This document shows positions 1,095 to 8,594 of a stretch of DNA of 64,000 nucleotides, one piece after another. How positions within the stretch are numbered: the stretch's first letter is position 1; each line of letters begins with the position of its first letter. Under the pieces are notes generated by a model. The model saw only the letters and a list, made by a program, of their open reading frames with translations, was not told the origin of the DNA and searched no databases. Source of the stretch: Takakia lepidozioides (taxonomy: Eukaryota > Plantae > Bryophyta); NCBI GenBank assembly GCA_030704615.1, contig CM060732.1, positions 60,760,001-60,824,000 on the forward strand. The letters run 5' to 3'. Both the position numbers and the translations under genes were made by a program.

Positions 1095-2698
1095 TTAGCT
1101 CTTGCACTCCCAAATAACAAAGCCATCACAATTGCATAGTCTCTTGTGCACACCAGCCCTGTCACTGCGGCCAATGACTGCAGCGGCTATTTTCTCAACG
1201 TTCGCACTAAGTCCAGGGGCGTATAAAACTACCGAACGCCCAATCATATCTGTCACCATCAGCTTACTGTTTGTTGCAGAGCTTTCTGCATGGCCATTTC
1301 TATCGGCTACCAGCATTCCCAAATCTCCCGCAGGTGTTTCCTACAAGCCATCCATTTTAACACAATTTCACTGAAATCATGGTTGACTTAAAGAAGCTAC
1401 TACTCTCTCTAGAAATTTGAACGCTTGAACTGGTTTGAACATACACCTCAAACAAGCTTTGACCTGTAAACTTCAATTCAATTCACCAACTTAGGTGCAG
1501 CCCTAACTCCTCCAGATCTCACACACCTCACCCACATACTGTTGGGGGACTGAAAGGTCCAAAGTAAGTCACTCACAAATATTGGCAGATTGGAGGGGTG
1601 ATAAGCTGCACCCGTGCTGGCAGGGCCCTGTGTGAGGTCACCGTATTCGTGCACACTCCAGCCATGGGCACCAGGGGCCAAACCATCGATGACAGCCTCT
1701 ATCACGCATGCCTGCAGCCCAGTGACCTCTTGTGCAAATCTCACCACCCCGTGCACAACTGGGCCTTTAAATTCTGCCACCGCTATCGTCATAGGTTCGC
1801 CTGTCTCAGGCCAGAATATGAATTAGTGAACAACCAAGTGTGGTCGGAGCTGCCTGCAAAAACTGAGGCATCCTCCACTAGGAAGAAATATTGCATCTTT
1901 ACCTACTCTTGAGACCTTCCTGAAGTGACGCAGAATAACTCTTTTGTTGAAGTACAGAGCACTAATCTTAGATCACAGCACACTGCTATTCGAGTGATGA
2001 GACGTACATCAAGGACGACTTCGTTATCTCAGTTACCTTCGCGACATACATGTACACCTTCAAAACGAGACCCAGGAAGAAGTTGGTTTGAGGTGGCAGG
2101 AATTCCTGTAAATCTAATGCAGCTGTCTTGACAGTGGACTGCATCCGGGAAAGATTGAAGTCTGACTCACTTTTGTGTCCTGATTGTAGCTTGGGAAGTG
2201 GTGAATCATCGAAGCTCTTTGGCTTGCCTGACCCCATTACTTTGAACAGATCCTGACTGGAATACTCTTCAAAGATTTGTGAGTCACCTGTTGGTCCCAC
2301 CGTTGAATTCAGTATACATTGAGTCTTCATAGTATGTAATCCTTTTAAGTTGTAACATATATGCTACTTTTGGGCAACCGGCCATGTAGTGAGTTCACAC
2401 GAAAGCAACCGTACGTACAAATAAGTTGACGTACATGACCTCGGATCGTTTTTCCCAGCAACCTCAAATTATCTCTGATTCCGATTCCTGAGAACATCCA
2501 GGCTACTGGAAATTAATGGAGTACCTACCGCAGACATACTATGAAGAGACTATGAACAATAAGGCCCAGTGAGCTCGTATACGTACCCGCCGGTTGGACA
2601 TTGCAGGCGACCATCGTAGCTGCCCCTCCCGCACGTTTGCAGCTCCTCTTTCCCTGCTTCTGTTCCACACAGACAACACCAAGTCCAATACCCGCCAT
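1095..2698 (-). CDS. CCS: Copper chaperone for SOD (CCS)-like protein, 193 aa, apparently lacking the ATX1-like domain I
   Basis: Exons 2698-2587, 1800-1577 and 1340-1095 total 582 nt in phase, with the ATG in an AAAATGGCG context. Domain II motifs: AVAEFKGP..GVVRFAQ, GAHGWSVHEYGDLT.GPASTG, GDLG, IGRSVVLY. Domain III has the CxC motif in KRLCNCDG. Exon 1 is the least certain part. Confidence 0.85.
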
Positions 2699-3378
2699 TT
2701 TGAGGATTGCCTTTGTAATAGTCTCACTGTAAGTCACATGAATTGCATACCACCCGTGTTCAAAACCGAGGGTTCCTACCCTTCCAGATGTCCCGGTTGC
2801 ACTTTTTGTATCTTAATCTCTCTCTTCAGGGCCAATGTACATATATATAGCTTCTTTCTTCTCTTTTTGATTGAACAGCATGACATGCCTGAAGCAAAAC
2901 TGAGGGTGATCGAATCCACACCTGCTGAAGTTTGGTTACTGAGACAAACACAGTGGTTGCAATTCCTGGCTCTTTCACACCCGGCAGCAGGCTGAGGCCA
3001 CAGCTCCTAAATCCAAAGGCTGCAGGCGAAGTGATCCAAACAACCATTGGCCTCTCCAGCTAGTTCGGTCCACTAGCTCTCATTACATCTACATAGATGG
3101 GCACGCTTCCTGCCCAGCAGACCCTCCCAAGACCGGACGAGAGCCCACAAGTCCCTATGATCCACCGAAGCAAATGCCCCTCAAATGCCCCTCAAATGCC
3201 CATCTATATAGAACCCAGAATGCGAGGAATTGGGGACCTGCTCGAGGTAGATCTCGGTCAAACCATGGGGCAAGAGTGCTGGTAGAGAATTCAACACAAA
3301 GTAATTTGCATGGTGGCACGATGTTGTCACTTTTACGACACTACTATGCACTGTGTGCATTGGGTTTAAATCTCACAT

Positions 3379-3881
3379 GTACAGTGCACTGTACTACTAT
3401 GGCTCTTTTGTACTTGTATTGTGTACTACACTTGTGTACTGCACAGAGCTGTATGTTTGTTCAAAGCTTCGCTGAGTTAGTCCCAAGGGAATTCCTCCTT
3501 GTGCGGAAAACCCTTTAAGTCACACACACTTTGAGATCAACATAAGTAGTACATCTAGATCTACATCTCCGCAATACAGATGTTGGATATATACTCTTCT
3601 AGAAACTCTTGTTTTGAAGAGCCATGAATCTCTGAGCCACGGCTTATCATTGATAAAGGATGTCGTCATTGTGTTGTGCGGTCGTAAGAAGGGTAGACCT
3701 GCAGCTGGATGGATGCGGTTATGTGAGCCCTAGATGAAATGGTTGCTCAAGTCACATGTTTTTCTTACATGTGGGTCGCCCACTTGGGAGAAGAGCTCTA
3801 TTGTGTCTCTAAGTATTGTGTACTACACTAAATGGCCGCAGTACACAGGGATGCCTGTACTGCAGTAGTACACTGTAGTAC
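3379..3881. promoter_or_regulatory. Two clusters of GTAC(T) copper-response elements (SBP/SPL7/CRR1-type) in the shared divergent promoter
   Basis: 11 GTAC in about 500 bp: 3379, 3391, 3410, 3423, 3436, 3549, 3820, 3841, 3857, 3868, 3878. Ten are GTACT/AGTAC. TATA-like boxes lie near 3205 (minus side) and 4015 (plus side). Confidence 0.8.
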
Positions 3882-4083
3882 ACAGCTCCAGGCTGCTGGC
3901 ATCTTCTTCAAACAATTATTCTGAAACCCACTCATCTGGAGTTATTAAAGAGGTGCTCTTTGAAGCCACGCCCCTGACGTGTTTGTTCTGGGTTTGCATG
4001 ATCGCTTGCTATCTTATAGAATCGGCATTTGCCCGCCCCTTCACTCTTGACTTGCGTTTGCATGGTTCTCAGATCTGAGGATC

Positions 4084-6125
4084 ATGGCAGCTGCAGTTCC
4101 ACTACCGTTGGCAACCGTGGAGCTCAGGCCCCTCCCCTTCGATTTTGTAAGCGGGTTGTGGAAATCTGTAATTTGTGTTGATTTGTGTTTGTCTGATTGC
4201 ACAGGCGGCGCTTATCTGGATTCTGTACTGTCTGGCTGGGTTCTCGCTGGGTTCCGTGTGAATTATCAGATGAGGTGTTTAATCAGGTCGATTCAGAACT
4301 AATAGCGCTCGGCCCTGTAGCTGCATGTCTACGAGCGAGTAAGTCGGTCCTAGTGCTGTTCGAGTTGCGTCACGATGTCTGTTCAAGCTCCAGCTACCCG
4401 ACCACTTTGATAAGGCGTGGCCTAATACGTACGCATGGCAGGATGCGTTGGAACCACACATGAGCAGGCAGACTCTAGAAGTACACTGGGGTAAACACCA
4501 CCGTGCCTATGTGGACAATCTCAAGAAGCAAATCGATGGCACTGATCTGGCCCGCAAAAGCCTTGAGGAGATTGTGAAACTTTCTTACAACAACGGCCAG
4601 CCTACCTCCGCTTTCAACAATGCTGGCCAGGTTTTCTTCTTAAGCTTCATTCTACTCTCGTCTCTTCTGAGTCCCATATATATACTTTTTGAGCTTCAAA
4701 CCGGTTTTCAGAGCTATGTCTCCCTCTCCATATAATCTGTCAGGCGACTGTCTGCCGTTCTCTTGCAGGTATGCCCAAGGCGGTAATTGCTGGAAGTCAT
4801 GCTTAGAGTTCCAAATTTCATGAATTGCTATGTATATCTGGACACGTTCAGTTTGAACACTGCCAACTCCATCACACATATGATGCACGATCCAAAAATG
4901 TTACCAGGACTTCTGAGGGTGCCAAAGGGGCCCGGGCGCAGGCATGGAACCACGAGTTTTTCTGGCAATCAATTAAGCCGGGTGGCGGCAAGAAGCCGAG
5001 CGGTGAGGTGCTCCAGTTGGTAGAACGGGACTTTGGGTCATTTCAGGGGTTTGTGCAGCAGTTCAAACAGGCTGGCGCTTCCCAGTTTGGTTCTGGCTGG
5101 GCATGGCTCGTCTGTAAGCAAAACATCCGAGCAAAACTAGTTTTTCATGTCATTCTGTGTTAAAGCAACAAAGTAGATTCCCAGATTGCACAGGTTTGAG
5201 CTTGTAAAATATATATGCCTTTAATTCGATCAGGCCTAGCGTCTTGTGACTGAAACATTCATGCCTTGCGGGGGATGAGGAGCAGGGAAAGATGGAAAGC
5301 TAGAAATTCAGAGCACTGCCAACGCCATCAGTCCACTTGTCTTCGGCTACAAAGTAAGGGCCTTCACCTAAGTAGTTGTAGCCTATGCGCTATCTCTTTC
5401 ACTGTTTCTATATGATTATGTCGAGAATTCTACGTGCGATCTTACATGTAAGCTTACATTGTGGCTCAGAATATCACTTGATAGGCCAACCGCACTTACT
5501 GACTCATAATTTACTGAGAACTGTCTGGGTGATTGATGGAACGGAATGGGGGGTGACAGCCTTTGCTGGTTGCGGATGTCTGGGAGGTGCGTATCTTACC
5601 TCAGCCTATTTTGAACTCTTCCTTACAATTTCCTGCTTCTGATATTACTGTACTGAGCTGGTGTTTTGTCCTAGGTAGATCCCGCATGATTTTTCGCAAA
5701 TTGAAGTATCTTAGCACTGGAATCTCAAGGATTCTAGAAACCAGCTTGTAACATATCATCTCTAAGAGAGGACGTCCTGCTAGAGAAAGAAGCTTGCTGG
5801 AGAAAACTCAAATTGAAGTTCTTGAGCATGAAATCTTATGTTTGCTGGGGTATGGGGATGGGCTTCGGTTGTGCAGCACGCTTATTACCTCGACTTTCAG
5901 GTGAGTAGCAGCATGCCTTGCCTTCGTAATCTGATACTTCAAGTACATCCCCGCACAGTGAACCAGGTCTTTGGCATTTTCGAGATCACAAATTGGAACT
6001 TACAATAGTGTTGTGTGATTGTGGGTATAATACAGAACCGGCGGCCTGATTATTTGACTACATTTGTGGATGAGTTGATCTCGTGGGAAGCTGTCGCTGC
6101 GCGTCTGGAGCACGCGCGCACATGA
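4084..6125 (+). CDS. FSD: Iron superoxide dismutase, 7 exons, no obvious transit peptide
   Basis: Exons 4084-4146, 4442-4630, 4942-5113, 5286-5353, 5560-5586, 5877-5900, 6036-6125. Motifs [27 protein letters not shown] (Fe-type), [26 protein letters not shown]. Confidence 0.95.
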
Positions 6126-6961
6126 TTTTACCCACAACCCGTACTGGACCCTGGAAAATTCCTAACCGCAGCAGATCAGCTGCAGTATTGAGGCCCCAAC
6201 AGTACCTGCAATTTGGCTCAGTCGTTAAATGGGATAAATGATTCCTTGCTTGTTTCCCATTGTACCTGAGTGTGCCAAATGCCAATTCAGAGACTTTTTA
6301 AATTGAGAAGCATCTCCGTCTCTCTCTCGCGTGTAGGTATGCTTTGTACATCCACGTTGTCTGGTAATACTTACGTTCTTCTCTCAAACGTTGCAAATCT
6401 GCAGACAGTTGCCATGCTATCAACTGCAGAATAAGTCGTTAGGAGATTAGATCAGATCTTAAATTGTACTGCATGCAGTGTACACATTCTCTAGTGCGCC
6501 TAAGGACATATGAATTGTTGATAGCGACGTGGCTGGCAGTAGTGAATCTGTTCTTCCCACGGCCTGGCCGCATATATGCTCCCAGATGGTCTGTCTATGT
6601 ATGGAGTGTCTCAATTCTGATGAGTGTTCTTCATAGCGTGATCAAACACAGACTAATACTTGATTGTAGTCTTATGGTGTCAATGGAAGAATAGATGTTG
6701 TCATGTAAAGATTCTTATACAAATCTAGACTGACGGTATGGGCTCTGACACGAGTTCGAATGAAGCTGCGAAGTAGATTCAGTTAGCTTAAGAAAAAAAA
6801 CAAAAAAACAAAAGGATAATAATCAAATTTGCGGGCGCTGGGGCAGAGTATATTGCAAGATTATGGCTTTAGAGATATACATATAAACGTATGCAAAGAA
6901 AACATGGTTTGTGGGTGGGAGCGTAGGTTATAGCTACTAGCGTAGTTTGTGCCGTTGGCAC

Positions 6962-7385
6962 AAGTGTTAAGTGTCATCTAAGCCCAAGTGCAATCTCCTA
7001 TGTATCCAAGTGCCTCTCTTCCCAAGTACAACCTCTAGGGTAGCTGCCGTTGGCCCATGTGTGAAGAATTGAAATCTAAGACCAAGTGCAATATCATATG
7101 TATTCCAATGCGTCTCCTATGTCTCCTATGTCGAGGCCCATCTAAGACCAATTTCAATCTTCTATGTATCCAAGTGCATCTCCCGCGTAGAGGCCCAAGT
7201 GTCCATTGTCATATAAGCCCAAGTGCAATCTCCTATGTATCCAAGTGTGTCTCCCAAGTAGACGCTCAAGTGCGACCTCCAATGTCTAATGTCATTTAAG
7301 TCCAAGTGCAATCCCCTGTGCATCCAGAGACCCTGCAGTTTGGGAGATCTCCACGTCAATCTCAACAATCTCTATGTCATTGCCC
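6962..7385 (+). repeat. Degenerate minisatellite, unit about 22 bp (CCAAGTGCAATCTCCTATGTAT)
   Basis: Near-exact or decayed copies at about 6984, 7082, 7149, 7219 and 7302, with further partial CCAAGTG units between them. Confidence 0.7.
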
Positions 7386-7414
7386 ACTTTGCTATTTTTG
7401 CAATCTTTGTCGAT

Positions 7415-8594
7415 CACTACTGCTAAAAGGGGGGTTTACGACGCCCATGGCCCGGCGCCGTGCGACCCCACTTATTAGCGACGTCAAGAGGGTCGTTATT
7501 CATGGGTCGGTATTATACCGACCCCTGAGGGGTCGCTATACTGAAATCCCAGCAAAATGAGGATCTTAAAATGACTAAGTCATTGGGACCGACCCCCCCC
7601 CCCGGCGTCGCTAATACCGCGGGGTTGATTTCCCGTCGGTTTCTTCTTGCGACGCCCCTGCCGACAGTCCCAATCCGACCCCTCTGGGTCGGATTAGGGT
7701 TTTTTTCCCCAAACGACCTCCGGGCCAACCAAATATATTTTTAACACTCTCTACCCTCGTCCTGGGCGTCGCTTTAACGGGGAAAGTTGATTGTTAAAGT
7801 TCTAATTTTGATTTTTAATTATTTAATTTCAATTTAAAGTCTGATTTTTGAGCAGGAAACCCGCTGATAGCACCCCAGAAATATTTTGCAAAAATACTCA
7901 CAGCGACCCCCCATAGGTCGCGGCGTCATGTTATTGTTAGGAAGTTGAATCGACCCCAGGAAGGCGCTGATAGCACCCCCGAAAATATGGACAAAAAAAT
8001 CTGACAGCGACGGCCTAGGGGTCGCTGTCAGCAGCGTCGGGTTATTGTTTAGGGACTTGAAGCGACCTCAGGGAAGGCGCTGATAGTAGTAACGACCCCA
8101 GGGAGTCACTAATAGAACCATTTGATATTAAATCGAATTTTAATGAATTTTAAATAAGTATTATGATTTAGAATATCTAGGATTGCGGATTTGAGGGGCG
8201 CAATGATTTTGTTTTTGGCAATAATTGGAATTCCAGACATAATCAAAAAGGTACTGCCAGTAGAGAACAGTAGTGAACGTGATCTATCTGGCTCCAAAAA
8301 GTGGTTTTGTGAAGCCACGCGTTAAAACCCTGGTCATCGAATGGCCTAATCACACCACTCTTGTCCTTCTCTTCTTTGGGAAACATATTGGTTTCCCTTT
8401 ATCATGTCAGTTACTCCAAACTATGAAAAGTCCATGCAACCAGGTAACTGGCAGAATTCAACATGAAAAATTAGGGTCGAAATGGAAACAACAGGGTGAA
8501 ATGTGTTGAATACAAACCATGTTACCCTACCAAACGTACAAACCAAGTGCTCCCTCACAAGTTTTAGACATCTGCCCTTACATCAATAGTAGTG
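7415..8594. mobile_element. Non-autonomous CACTA (En/Spm)-like element
   Basis: Begins CACTACT at 7415. AGTAGTG ends at 8594 with GAT on both flanks (candidate 3-bp TSD). CpG-rich subterminal repeats (CGACCCC/GGGGTCG/GCGACG) occur in both orientations at 7430-8110. An alternative right end, CAGTAGTG at 8268-8275, has no TSD. Confidence 0.6.

Follow-up and report, generated by a model that had tools for sequence, protein, structure and literature searches.

Copper economy in plants is usually illustrated by the replacement of Cu/Zn-SOD by Fe-SOD, a swap attributed to microRNAs and the induction of FSD1. When copper is scarce, miR398 reduces CCS in Arabidopsis. The Arabidopsis FSD1 promoter carries SPL7/CRR1 elements; GTACTRC is the SPL7 ChIP motif, and TGTACT/AGTACA flanks make the best in-vitro site (PMC9516184). 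Among mosses, GTACT elements have been mapped in the Fe-SOD promoter of Barbula unguiculata in work that also involves PpSBP2 and that, as summarised in PMC3617394, regards the region as driving Fe-SOD alone. Copper genes arranged head-to-head with GTAC boxes and a proposed bidirectional promoter have been described for Arabidopsis COPT1/COPT3, two paralogous transporters with 2.3 kb between them and antiphase expression (PMC6037871).

Here we analyse a window of 64 kb from the moss Takakia lepidozioides, in which a CCS-like gene and an Fe-SOD gene diverge from a GTAC-rich spacer. The array resembles that of Arabidopsis FSD1 in its clustered GTACTRC motifs and TGTACT/AGTACA flanks, placed just upstream of a gene for an FSD1-type Fe-SOD that lacks a transit peptide, but it lies between two divergent genes, the second of which is a CCS paralogue. 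The Fe-SOD belongs to the same moss clade as that of Barbula and has the same GTACT motif. Unlike COPT1/COPT3, the two moss genes are unrelated, less than 1.1 kb apart, co-moving and linked across mosses. The paralogue, which lacks domain I and is labelled CCSL throughout, shares the SOD-like domain II, docking Arg, G-D-x-T motif and domain III CxC with canonical CCS of plants, yeast and human and with Drosophila CCS (PMC2602909, PMC6383938). It differs from Drosophila CCS, which lacks MxCxxC (PMC2602909), in that the whole HMA domain is undetectable and not the cysteines alone, and from canonical CCS in that its linker is rewritten, canonical CCS coexists with it and it runs opposite to CSD1/2. 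Its orthologues or closest kin, Physcomitrium Pp3c17_14500, Ceratodon KC19_2G049600 and Marchantia MpSOD4, likewise consist of a Sod_Cu domain and a CxC tail and are annotated as plain CCS or SOD; we found no paper that notes their domain loss, their linkage to FSD or their promoter. A cut-down CCS copy paired with moss Fe-SOD appears to be undescribed.

Structure of the locus

Pfam matches on the exons (Sod_Cu, Sod_Fe_N and Sod_Fe_C) and spliced RNA contigs for both genes (run X1) bear out the head-to-head arrangement proposed in the initial annotation (Table 1). Both transcripts occur in run X1 and neither in run X2, a weak comparison of presence and absence only. The Fe-SOD ATG at 4084 was correctly placed, whereas the ATG assigned to CCSL, at 2698, lies inside intron 1, is spliced out and falls in a bin (2670-2866) with no RNA coverage. 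The intron call is based on the loose end of a single contig (3171-2922), whose 12 loose letters match 2648-2659 exactly and imply a GT..AG intron at 2921-2660, and on orthologous intron phase, the CCSL phases (0,1,1,0) being those of Ceratodon and Physcomitrium. Translation most likely starts at 3047, the first in-frame ATG of exon 1, from which 261 amino acids are read without a stop; ATG 2698 shares the reading frame of exon 2 and may therefore see minor use. The exon 1 product looks transit-peptide-like. With the start at 3047, the two ATGs are 1,036 bp apart and not about 1.4 kb as first estimated, and the divergent transcript 5' ends at 3171 and 3947, which as contig ends only approximate the starts, are separated by about 775 bp, within the 1 kb that marks bidirectional promoters; in Physcomitrium the annotated genes stand 201 bp apart.

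Table 1. Features of the CCSL and Fe-SOD locus (positions within the window)
Feature	Position	Strand	Details
CCSL exon 1	2922..3171	-	5' UTR 3171-3048, probable ATG 3047, 42 codons; RNA contig and frame check
CCSL intron 1	2660..2921	-	GT..AG, phase 0; holds ATG 2698
CCSL exon 2	2587..2659	-	RNA contig joint 2285/2585
CCSL exon 3	2171..2287	-	Linker at the expected place of domain I; no HMA or MxCxxC
CCSL exon 4	1577..1800	-	First half of SOD-like domain II; docking Arg (human R104), G-D-L-T motif
CCSL exon 5, coding part	1095..1340	-	Remaining domain II, altered domain III linker, CxC, stop
CCSL CxC (C249-N-C251)	1136-1128	-	In exon 5
TATA-like box (putative function)	3205..3210	-	About 35 bp upstream of CCSL transcript 5' end
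Second conserved element TGACAACATCGTG	3317..3329	-	Between cluster A and CCSL start; same position in five other mosses
GTAC cluster A	3379..3442	.	Five GTAC, of which four are TGTACT and three GTACTRC; 208-268 bp upstream of CCSL 5' end
Single central GTACTAC site	3546..3552	.	Motif scan
TGAC(A/G)ACATC element, second weaker copy	3659..3668	-	Second copy also in three other moss spacers
GTAC cluster B	3820..3881	.	Five GTAC, all GTACTRC; 66-127 bp upstream of Fe-SOD 5' end
Fe-SOD exon 1	3947..4146	+	5' UTR starting at or before 3947; ATG 4084; lacks a transit peptide; RNA contig
Fe-SOD exons 2-7	4442-4630, 4942-5113, 5286-5353, 5560-5586, 5877-5900, 6036-6125	+	RNA contigs

The spacer does contain two dense GTAC clusters, one on each gene's side, as had been claimed. 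It holds 11 GTAC sites in all, nine of which are GTACTRC (0.28 expected) and ten TGTACT/AGTACA, and the two clusters are the only places in the 64 kb with five GTAC within 65 bp (chance of even one, about 0.003). Clustered GTAC of the GTACTRC or TGTACT form, a few hundred bases from a start, is what is seen in SPL7/CRR1-type promoters. The clusters have an exact 17-mer in common (3416-3432 in A and 3813-3829 in B). The inverted GTAC sites of cluster B account for its ability to form a hairpin (z -2.8). We rejected the idea that the spacer encodes a microRNA or another RNA, since Rfam gave no match and no RNA contig covers 3261-3851.

The Fe-SOD is of the FSD1 type, with Sod_Fe_N and Sod_Fe_C domains, intact iron-ligand motifs and a spliced open frame of 210 amino acids. 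It is 76% identical to the cytosolic Fe-SOD of Pogonatum and 71% to that of Barbula, and groups in the clade of the Barbula gene (support 99/98), whose GTACT elements are reported to have been mapped (PMC3617394). The PpFSD3 orthologue has been reported as induced by low copper.

Conservation and regulation of the pair

The divergent CCSL-FSD pair is kept in Ceratodon, Physcomitrium, the Polytrichaceae-like loci L020/L021 and two other mosses (L002 and L014), and was recovered from the CCSL side and from the FSD side alike. GTACTRC-dense spacers accompany it in all of these, and at each moss locus GTACTRC is most concentrated either in the spacer or upstream of CCSL; because orthologous spacers show the enrichment again, a transposon origin of the clusters was discarded. 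The window's proteins branch below those of all other moss loci, its spacer does not align with that of L002, and synonymous sites are saturated. The suggestion that a CCS-family gene and a copper-regulated Fe-SOD are physically coupled around SBP-type elements is supported, and the coupling is conserved in other mosses. To our knowledge, it is uncommon for gene linkage to be kept across a whole plant phylum. In two liverworts, CCSL has its own GTAC cluster and no Fe-SOD nearby. No Fe-SOD lies in the 665 bp by which locus L001 extends upstream of CCSL, and candidate P0177/L010 proved to be a canonical-type CCS fragment. The best 120 hits included no HMA-less CCS paralogue from Sphagnum, hornworts, lycophytes or ferns, and a metagenome scan returned canonical CCS alone.

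Coordinated change is seen in the Physcomitrium orthologues, Pp3c17_14500 and Pp3c17_14510. Both rise in ppdnmt2 (0.34 to 14.5 and 0.75 to 46 FPKM), together with COPT (PMC7419982), and in hkt, 7- and 10-fold (PMC11826126). Upon Fusarium infection both fall (log2 -3.8/-3.6 and -4.6/-4.0), as does COPT (-3.6/-3.3), while CSD1 (+3.8/+2.2) and CSD2 (+3.6/+2.4) rise (10.1101/2022.10.21.513210). The pair thus moves in the same direction in all three published datasets, with COPT alongside in two and CSD1/2 opposite in the one that lists them; copper was not deliberately varied in any of the three, and the copper reading comes from these marker genes. We found no direct copper experiment on the CCS-like gene in the literature. 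The initial annotation had allowed for either co-induction or reciprocal control, and it is co-induction that fits this joint movement. Synteny and co-expression largely refute reciprocal control, as well as an adjacency by chance in which a repeat or small transposon supplied the GTAC clusters, and such readings seem to us highly improbable: the hairpin-forming potential of cluster B and the 17-mer repeat would suit such an origin, but the pair and its motif enrichment recur in at least five further lineages, the direction of change agrees in every dataset, and the hairpin has neither Rfam match nor RNA contig.

We consider it probable that the locus is an ancient moss copper-deficiency module, in which an SBP regulator acts on the GTACTRC arrays of the spacer and Fe-SOD and CCSL come on when copper is short. 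The arrays in the spacer of about 0.8 kb would be bound by an SBP-domain factor, whether an activator like SPL7 or a repressor like PpSBP2 that lets go when copper is low; the FSD1-type Fe-SOD and CCSL would then both be almost silent while copper is plentiful and both active when it is scarce. Co-induction does not require shared sites, since a cluster lies close to each gene and in liverworts CCSL comes with a cluster but no Fe-SOD. It is a serious, if not the favoured, possibility that the regulation is the same but that two independent copper-deficiency promoters stand back to back, each cluster serving its nearest gene and the linkage persisting by inertia or shared chromatin. FSD-side and CCSL-side groups are indeed separate in most moss spacers, liverwort CCSL carries ten GTAC by itself, and the 17-mer suggests local copying; yet the spacer stays at 570-1,040 bp in all lineages though downstream neighbours differ, and L002 and Ceratodon have just two FSD-side sites although copper strongly regulates this FSD clade. 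The GTAC sites that remain next to the truncated Physcomitrium FSD3 were discarded as proof of shared use, as the pseudogene looks recent (dN about 0.06-0.09).

The CCSL protein and its possible role

By sequence comparison, CCSL is a paralogue separate from normal CCS. It has no CxxC and no Pfam HMA domain in place of the MxCxxC-bearing domain I; all CCSL N-termini score about -1 bit against an HMM of plant CCS domain I, which has no significant match in the window, and a search for a hidden HMA exon in the introns and elsewhere in the window was fruitless. Domain II retains the docking residues (human R104, G135-D136-x-T138 and R232), and the docking face, the CxC and the downstream DG..W are conserved in CCSL, the CxC in every member. 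The linker that positions the CxC is nearly invariant in canonical plant CCS, with an Asn239 equivalent and fixed CxC spacing, and is rewritten in CCSL: that of the window is one residue shorter and lacks the Asn, those of liverworts vary in length, and the new form is invariant from Polytrichaceae to Bryopsida. Nor does CCSL carry all the Cu and Zn ligands and disulfide cysteines of a Cu/Zn-SOD enzyme: His46, His63, His120 and both cysteines are missing on inspection of the alignments (SOD1 numbering). A structure model gives Physcomitrium CCSL the CCS domain II fold, and dN/dS of 0.06-0.18 points to purifying selection on CCSL; the Physcomitrium copy is partly broken (Arg-to-His at the docking site, frameshift after the CxC). 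CCSL coexists with canonical CCS in Physcomitrium, Marchantia and Riccia; Pp3c20_5530, considered as the canonical Physcomitrium CCS, is a thioredoxin reductase. There is thus no support for reading the gene as the regular CCS arm of the switch known from Arabidopsis, because CCSL lacks domain I and runs opposite to CSD1/2, canonical CCS lies elsewhere in other bryophytes, and mosses have no miR398 (PMC9502370).

The role that we tentatively prefer for CCSL is that of a docking decoy or a copper-recovery factor for Cu/Zn-SOD. Through its intact domain II face it would dock on immature Cu/Zn-SOD or on canonical CCS and, unable to pass copper on in the normal way, would either block Cu/Zn-SOD maturation or retrieve copper via the CxC, with Fe-SOD replacing the activity. 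Retention of the docking residues together with replacement of the Asn239-bearing linker favours such a role. Loss of domain I alone would not make a decoy, as its cysteines are dispensable for SOD1 activation in yeast and absent in fly CCS (PMC2602909).

That dispensability also agrees with an unlikely alternative in which CCSL is a replacement chaperone for low copper, its CxC alone maturing or stabilising a small Cu/Zn-SOD pool such as the cytosolic forms. Conservation of the docking face and of the CxC with its downstream DG..W would be expected of such a chaperone, but CCSL runs opposite to CSD1/2, the CxC-positioning linker is rewritten and of varying length, and the window protein, alone among CCSL, has Gly at the position of human Ala231, a substitution that slows SOD1 binding more than 300-fold in human CCS (PMC6383938).

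Still more doubtful is a role towards Fe-SOD itself or another client, for instance in shielding apo-Fe-SOD from copper, with the linkage reflecting partnership. Tight linkage across mosses, the invariant new linker and joint decay in Physcomitrium of FSD3 and CCSL speak for it. Fe-SOD has a fold unrelated to that of Cu/Zn-SOD, however, whereas domain II of CCSL retains a Cu/Zn-SOD-type dimer face; liverwort CCSL is not linked to Fe-SOD, and joint decay is equally expected if the whole low-copper programme became dispensable.

Significance

Taking the decoy or recovery role further, bryophytes could spare copper by a switch at the protein level that flowering plants are not known to have, in which CCSL would be an anti-chaperone or recovery factor induced by copper shortage and kept by mosses, since their earliest split, on one bidirectional SBP-controlled promoter with Fe-SOD; we regard this fuller scheme as speculative and, as a whole, somewhat unlikely. 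A conserved, strongly co-induced chaperone paralogue that opposes its presumed client is an unexplained extra component of the SOD swap, and CCSL offers a natural test of the purpose of CCS domain I, which is still debated. As a compact promoter that works in both directions, with a wide range that reached about 40- to 60-fold in one of the datasets, the spacer might serve as a copper reporter. Reports of CCS rising under stress in Physcomitrium concern the CCSL paralogue, in a species whose copies are partly broken. In mosses, CCSL may help to save copper instead of delivering it.

Results

Pfam placed Sod_Cu on two minus-strand exons of the window and Sod_Fe_N/C on plus-strand exons, and RNA contigs from run X1 of the same species defined introns in both genes, confirming the initial annotation of CCS-like and Fe-SOD genes as divergent neighbours. 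The CCS-like start proposed at 2698 falls inside intron 1, itself inferred from a 12-base contig end; the ATG at 3047 opens a CCS-like frame of 261 residues (frame check). Intron phases of this gene (0,1,1,0) are the same in Ceratodon and Physcomitrium. The Fe-SOD gene has seven exons and encodes a 210-residue protein that keeps its ligand motifs intact and lacks a transit peptide. The 5' contig ends lie at 3171 (CCS-like) and 3947 (Fe-SOD), ~775 bp apart. In X2, a second run from the species, a neighbouring transcript was present and both the CCS-like and Fe-SOD transcripts were missing, a weak hint of joint switching.

Exon structure of the CCS-like gene in the window
Feature	Position	Strand	Evidence
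Exon 1	3171-2922	minus	X1 RNA contigs
Exon 2	2659-2587	minus	X1 RNA contigs
Exon 3	2287-2171	minus	X1 RNA contigs
Exon 4	1800-1577	minus	X1 RNA contigs
Exon 5	1340-1095	minus	X1 RNA contigs
Intron 1	2921-2660	minus	inferred: 12-base loose contig end exactly matches 2648-2659

At the window's start (1-1094), the CCS-like contig of X1 extends ~1.6 kb beyond position 700 and a separate 1.4 kb contig in X2 ends at 887; a convergent neighbour gene, its 3' end overlapping the CCS-like transcript, probably lies there. A low-depth contig links Fe-SOD exon 2 to ~4766 (4766-4830), so that intron 2 would contain either a little-used second acceptor site or an additional exon. Upstream ATGs occur in the 5' UTRs of CCS-like (three, 3083-3094) and Fe-SOD (3998 and 4062), and 3080-3215 folds with unusual stability (z -3.7). 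Just 3' of Fe-SOD (6900-8000), a run of similar short repeats precedes a GC-rich stretch resembling a DNA transposon end.

The spacer between the two starts holds 11 GTAC (10.6 per kb vs 2.4 elsewhere). Both dense clusters originally noticed there were found, and they are the only five-site clusters across the window, the chance of even one being ~3 in 1,000. GTACTRC occurs at nine spacer sites against 0.28 expected and the TGTACT/AGTACA form at ten; these are the ChIP-seq motif of the SBP-domain regulator SPL7 and its strongest site in vitro (PMC9516184). The clade B flank GTACGG was absent from every compared spacer. A second element, TGACAACATCGTG (3317-3329), occurs once in the window. In Ceratodon, Physcomitrium and the moss loci L001, L002 and L014 an exact or near copy of it separates the GTAC cluster from the start of the CCS-like gene; it was not found in moss locus L021 or in liverwort upstream regions.

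A synteny search, suggested at the outset for bryophytes, recovered the head-to-head pair in L002, Ceratodon and Physcomitrium when begun from a CCS-like exon, and in L014 and L020/L021 when begun from Fe-SOD. L020/L021 are probably Polytrichaceae, judging by an Fe-SOD nearly identical to that of Pogonatum. Moss pairs have 570-1,040 bp between ATGs and 8-11 GTAC per spacer (the L021 CCS-like start being approximate), and in every moss locus compared the densest GTACTRC stretch lies in the spacer or the region upstream of the CCS-like gene. The window and L002 spacers do not align and synonymous sites between the window and other mosses are saturated; the motifs have therefore outlived their surrounding sequence. 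In trees, the window's CCS-like and Fe-SOD proteins are each sister to all remaining moss copies. The Polytrichaceae-like mosses carry an additional four-site GTAC cluster within the CCS-like gene (L020:1050-1098, L021:6237-6282). In Ceratodon (L008:5343-5585), the annotated Fe-SOD is 292 aa, with an 81-residue extension crossing the FSD-side GTAC sites; this may be an annotation error, since relatives have 210-211 aa.

On Physcomitrium chromosome 17 the annotation leaves 201 bp between Pp3c17_14500 (CCS-like) and Pp3c17_14510 (PpFSD3), which are taken as locus L004 on position and domain content. Low copper is reported to induce PpFSD3. In three studies, which did not deliberately vary copper, the pair rose together in ppdnmt2 (0.34 to 14.5 and 0.75 to 46 FPKM, respectively, with the copper transporter COPT at +2.8 log2; PMC7419982) and in an hkt mutant (7-fold and 10-fold; PMC11826126), and on Fusarium infection of two genotypes fell by 3.6-4.6 log2, with COPT also down and the Cu/Zn-SODs CSD1 and CSD2 up 2.2-3.8 log2 (10.1101/2022.10.21.513210). 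The passages reporting these changes do not remark on the adjacency. Movement of the pair with COPT and against CSD1/CSD2 is the pattern that would be expected of a copper-status shift. Of the two modes initially envisaged, co-induction is thus favoured and reciprocal control contradicted, because the pair shifts in the same direction. Arabidopsis CCS decreases in low copper via miR398, which is missing from mosses (PMC9502370).

Discussion

The CCS-like protein has neither an HMA domain nor MxCxxC. In a model of the Physcomitrium orthologue the fold is that of the CCS domain II barrel, the N-terminus is predicted with low confidence, and the best matches are to human CCS domain II. Lacking SOD metal ligands, the protein is by its sequence a non-enzyme, despite the Marchantia name MpSOD4. 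It retains CxC and the docking residues defined for human CCS (PMC6383938), and the linker positioning CxC on SOD1, near-invariant in canonical plant CCS, is substituted. One new linker version is invariant from Polytrichaceae through Bryopsida; that of the window is shorter, with Gly at the Ala231 position. dN/dS among mosses is 0.06-0.18, and Physcomitrium, Marchantia and Riccia also encode a canonical HMA-bearing CCS. A decoy or copper-recovery factor may fit best, a reading we hold tentatively, because the SOD-docking face is kept, the copper-loading domain lost and the delivery linker rewritten in a protein present when CSD1/2 disappear. A chaperone for low-copper conditions is somewhat unlikely, and is entertained because CCS works without the domain I cysteines in yeast and fly (PMC2602909).

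Both Physcomitrium genes show damage. PpFSD3, cited as a copper-induced Fe-SOD, is broken in the GCA_000002425.3 assembly (chr 17, L004:4700-5186), with exon 2 shortened, exon 3 frameshifted and later exons missing from the 6 kb examined. Its CCS-like neighbour (L004:7430-7520) has a one-base deletion right after CxC-D-G that costs a conserved Trp, a frameshift also present in transcripts (L005-L007), and a docking-site Arg-to-His change. Such joint decay hints at a protein working with Fe-SOD or another client, which we consider quite unlikely.

Control of Fe-SOD via GTAC is already known. Searches of an open-access library turned up no paper that describes the linkage across mosses or treats the HMA-less paralogue as a class of its own. 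COPT1/COPT3, proposed earlier (PMC6037871), is, like the moss pair, a pair of divergent copper genes. The structure of the pair, its enriched motifs, the linkage shared among mosses and the joint expression changes are observed; we infer with good confidence that low copper, through an SBP factor, would switch both genes on. SPL7 is an activator, and PpSBP2 is described as an Fe-SOD repressor in high copper (PMC3617394); the sign of SBP control may be of either type.

The same HMA-less CCS-like gene, with ten GTAC in its upstream kilobase, occurs in Marchantia polymorpha and Riccia fluitans, with no Fe-SOD within 10 kb in either. A further HMA-less copy (P0005, L011:1164-1793) forms a long branch close to those of the liverworts; its 1.1 kb upstream holds no Fe-SOD and no GTAC cluster. 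The branch uniting liverwort and moss genes has support of 83/88, a single origin being neither rejected nor shown by the tree. Because liverworts carry the gene and its upstream GTAC without a nearby Fe-SOD, the GTAC-controlled paralogue looks older than its linkage to Fe-SOD, if the genes of both groups go back to a single origin.
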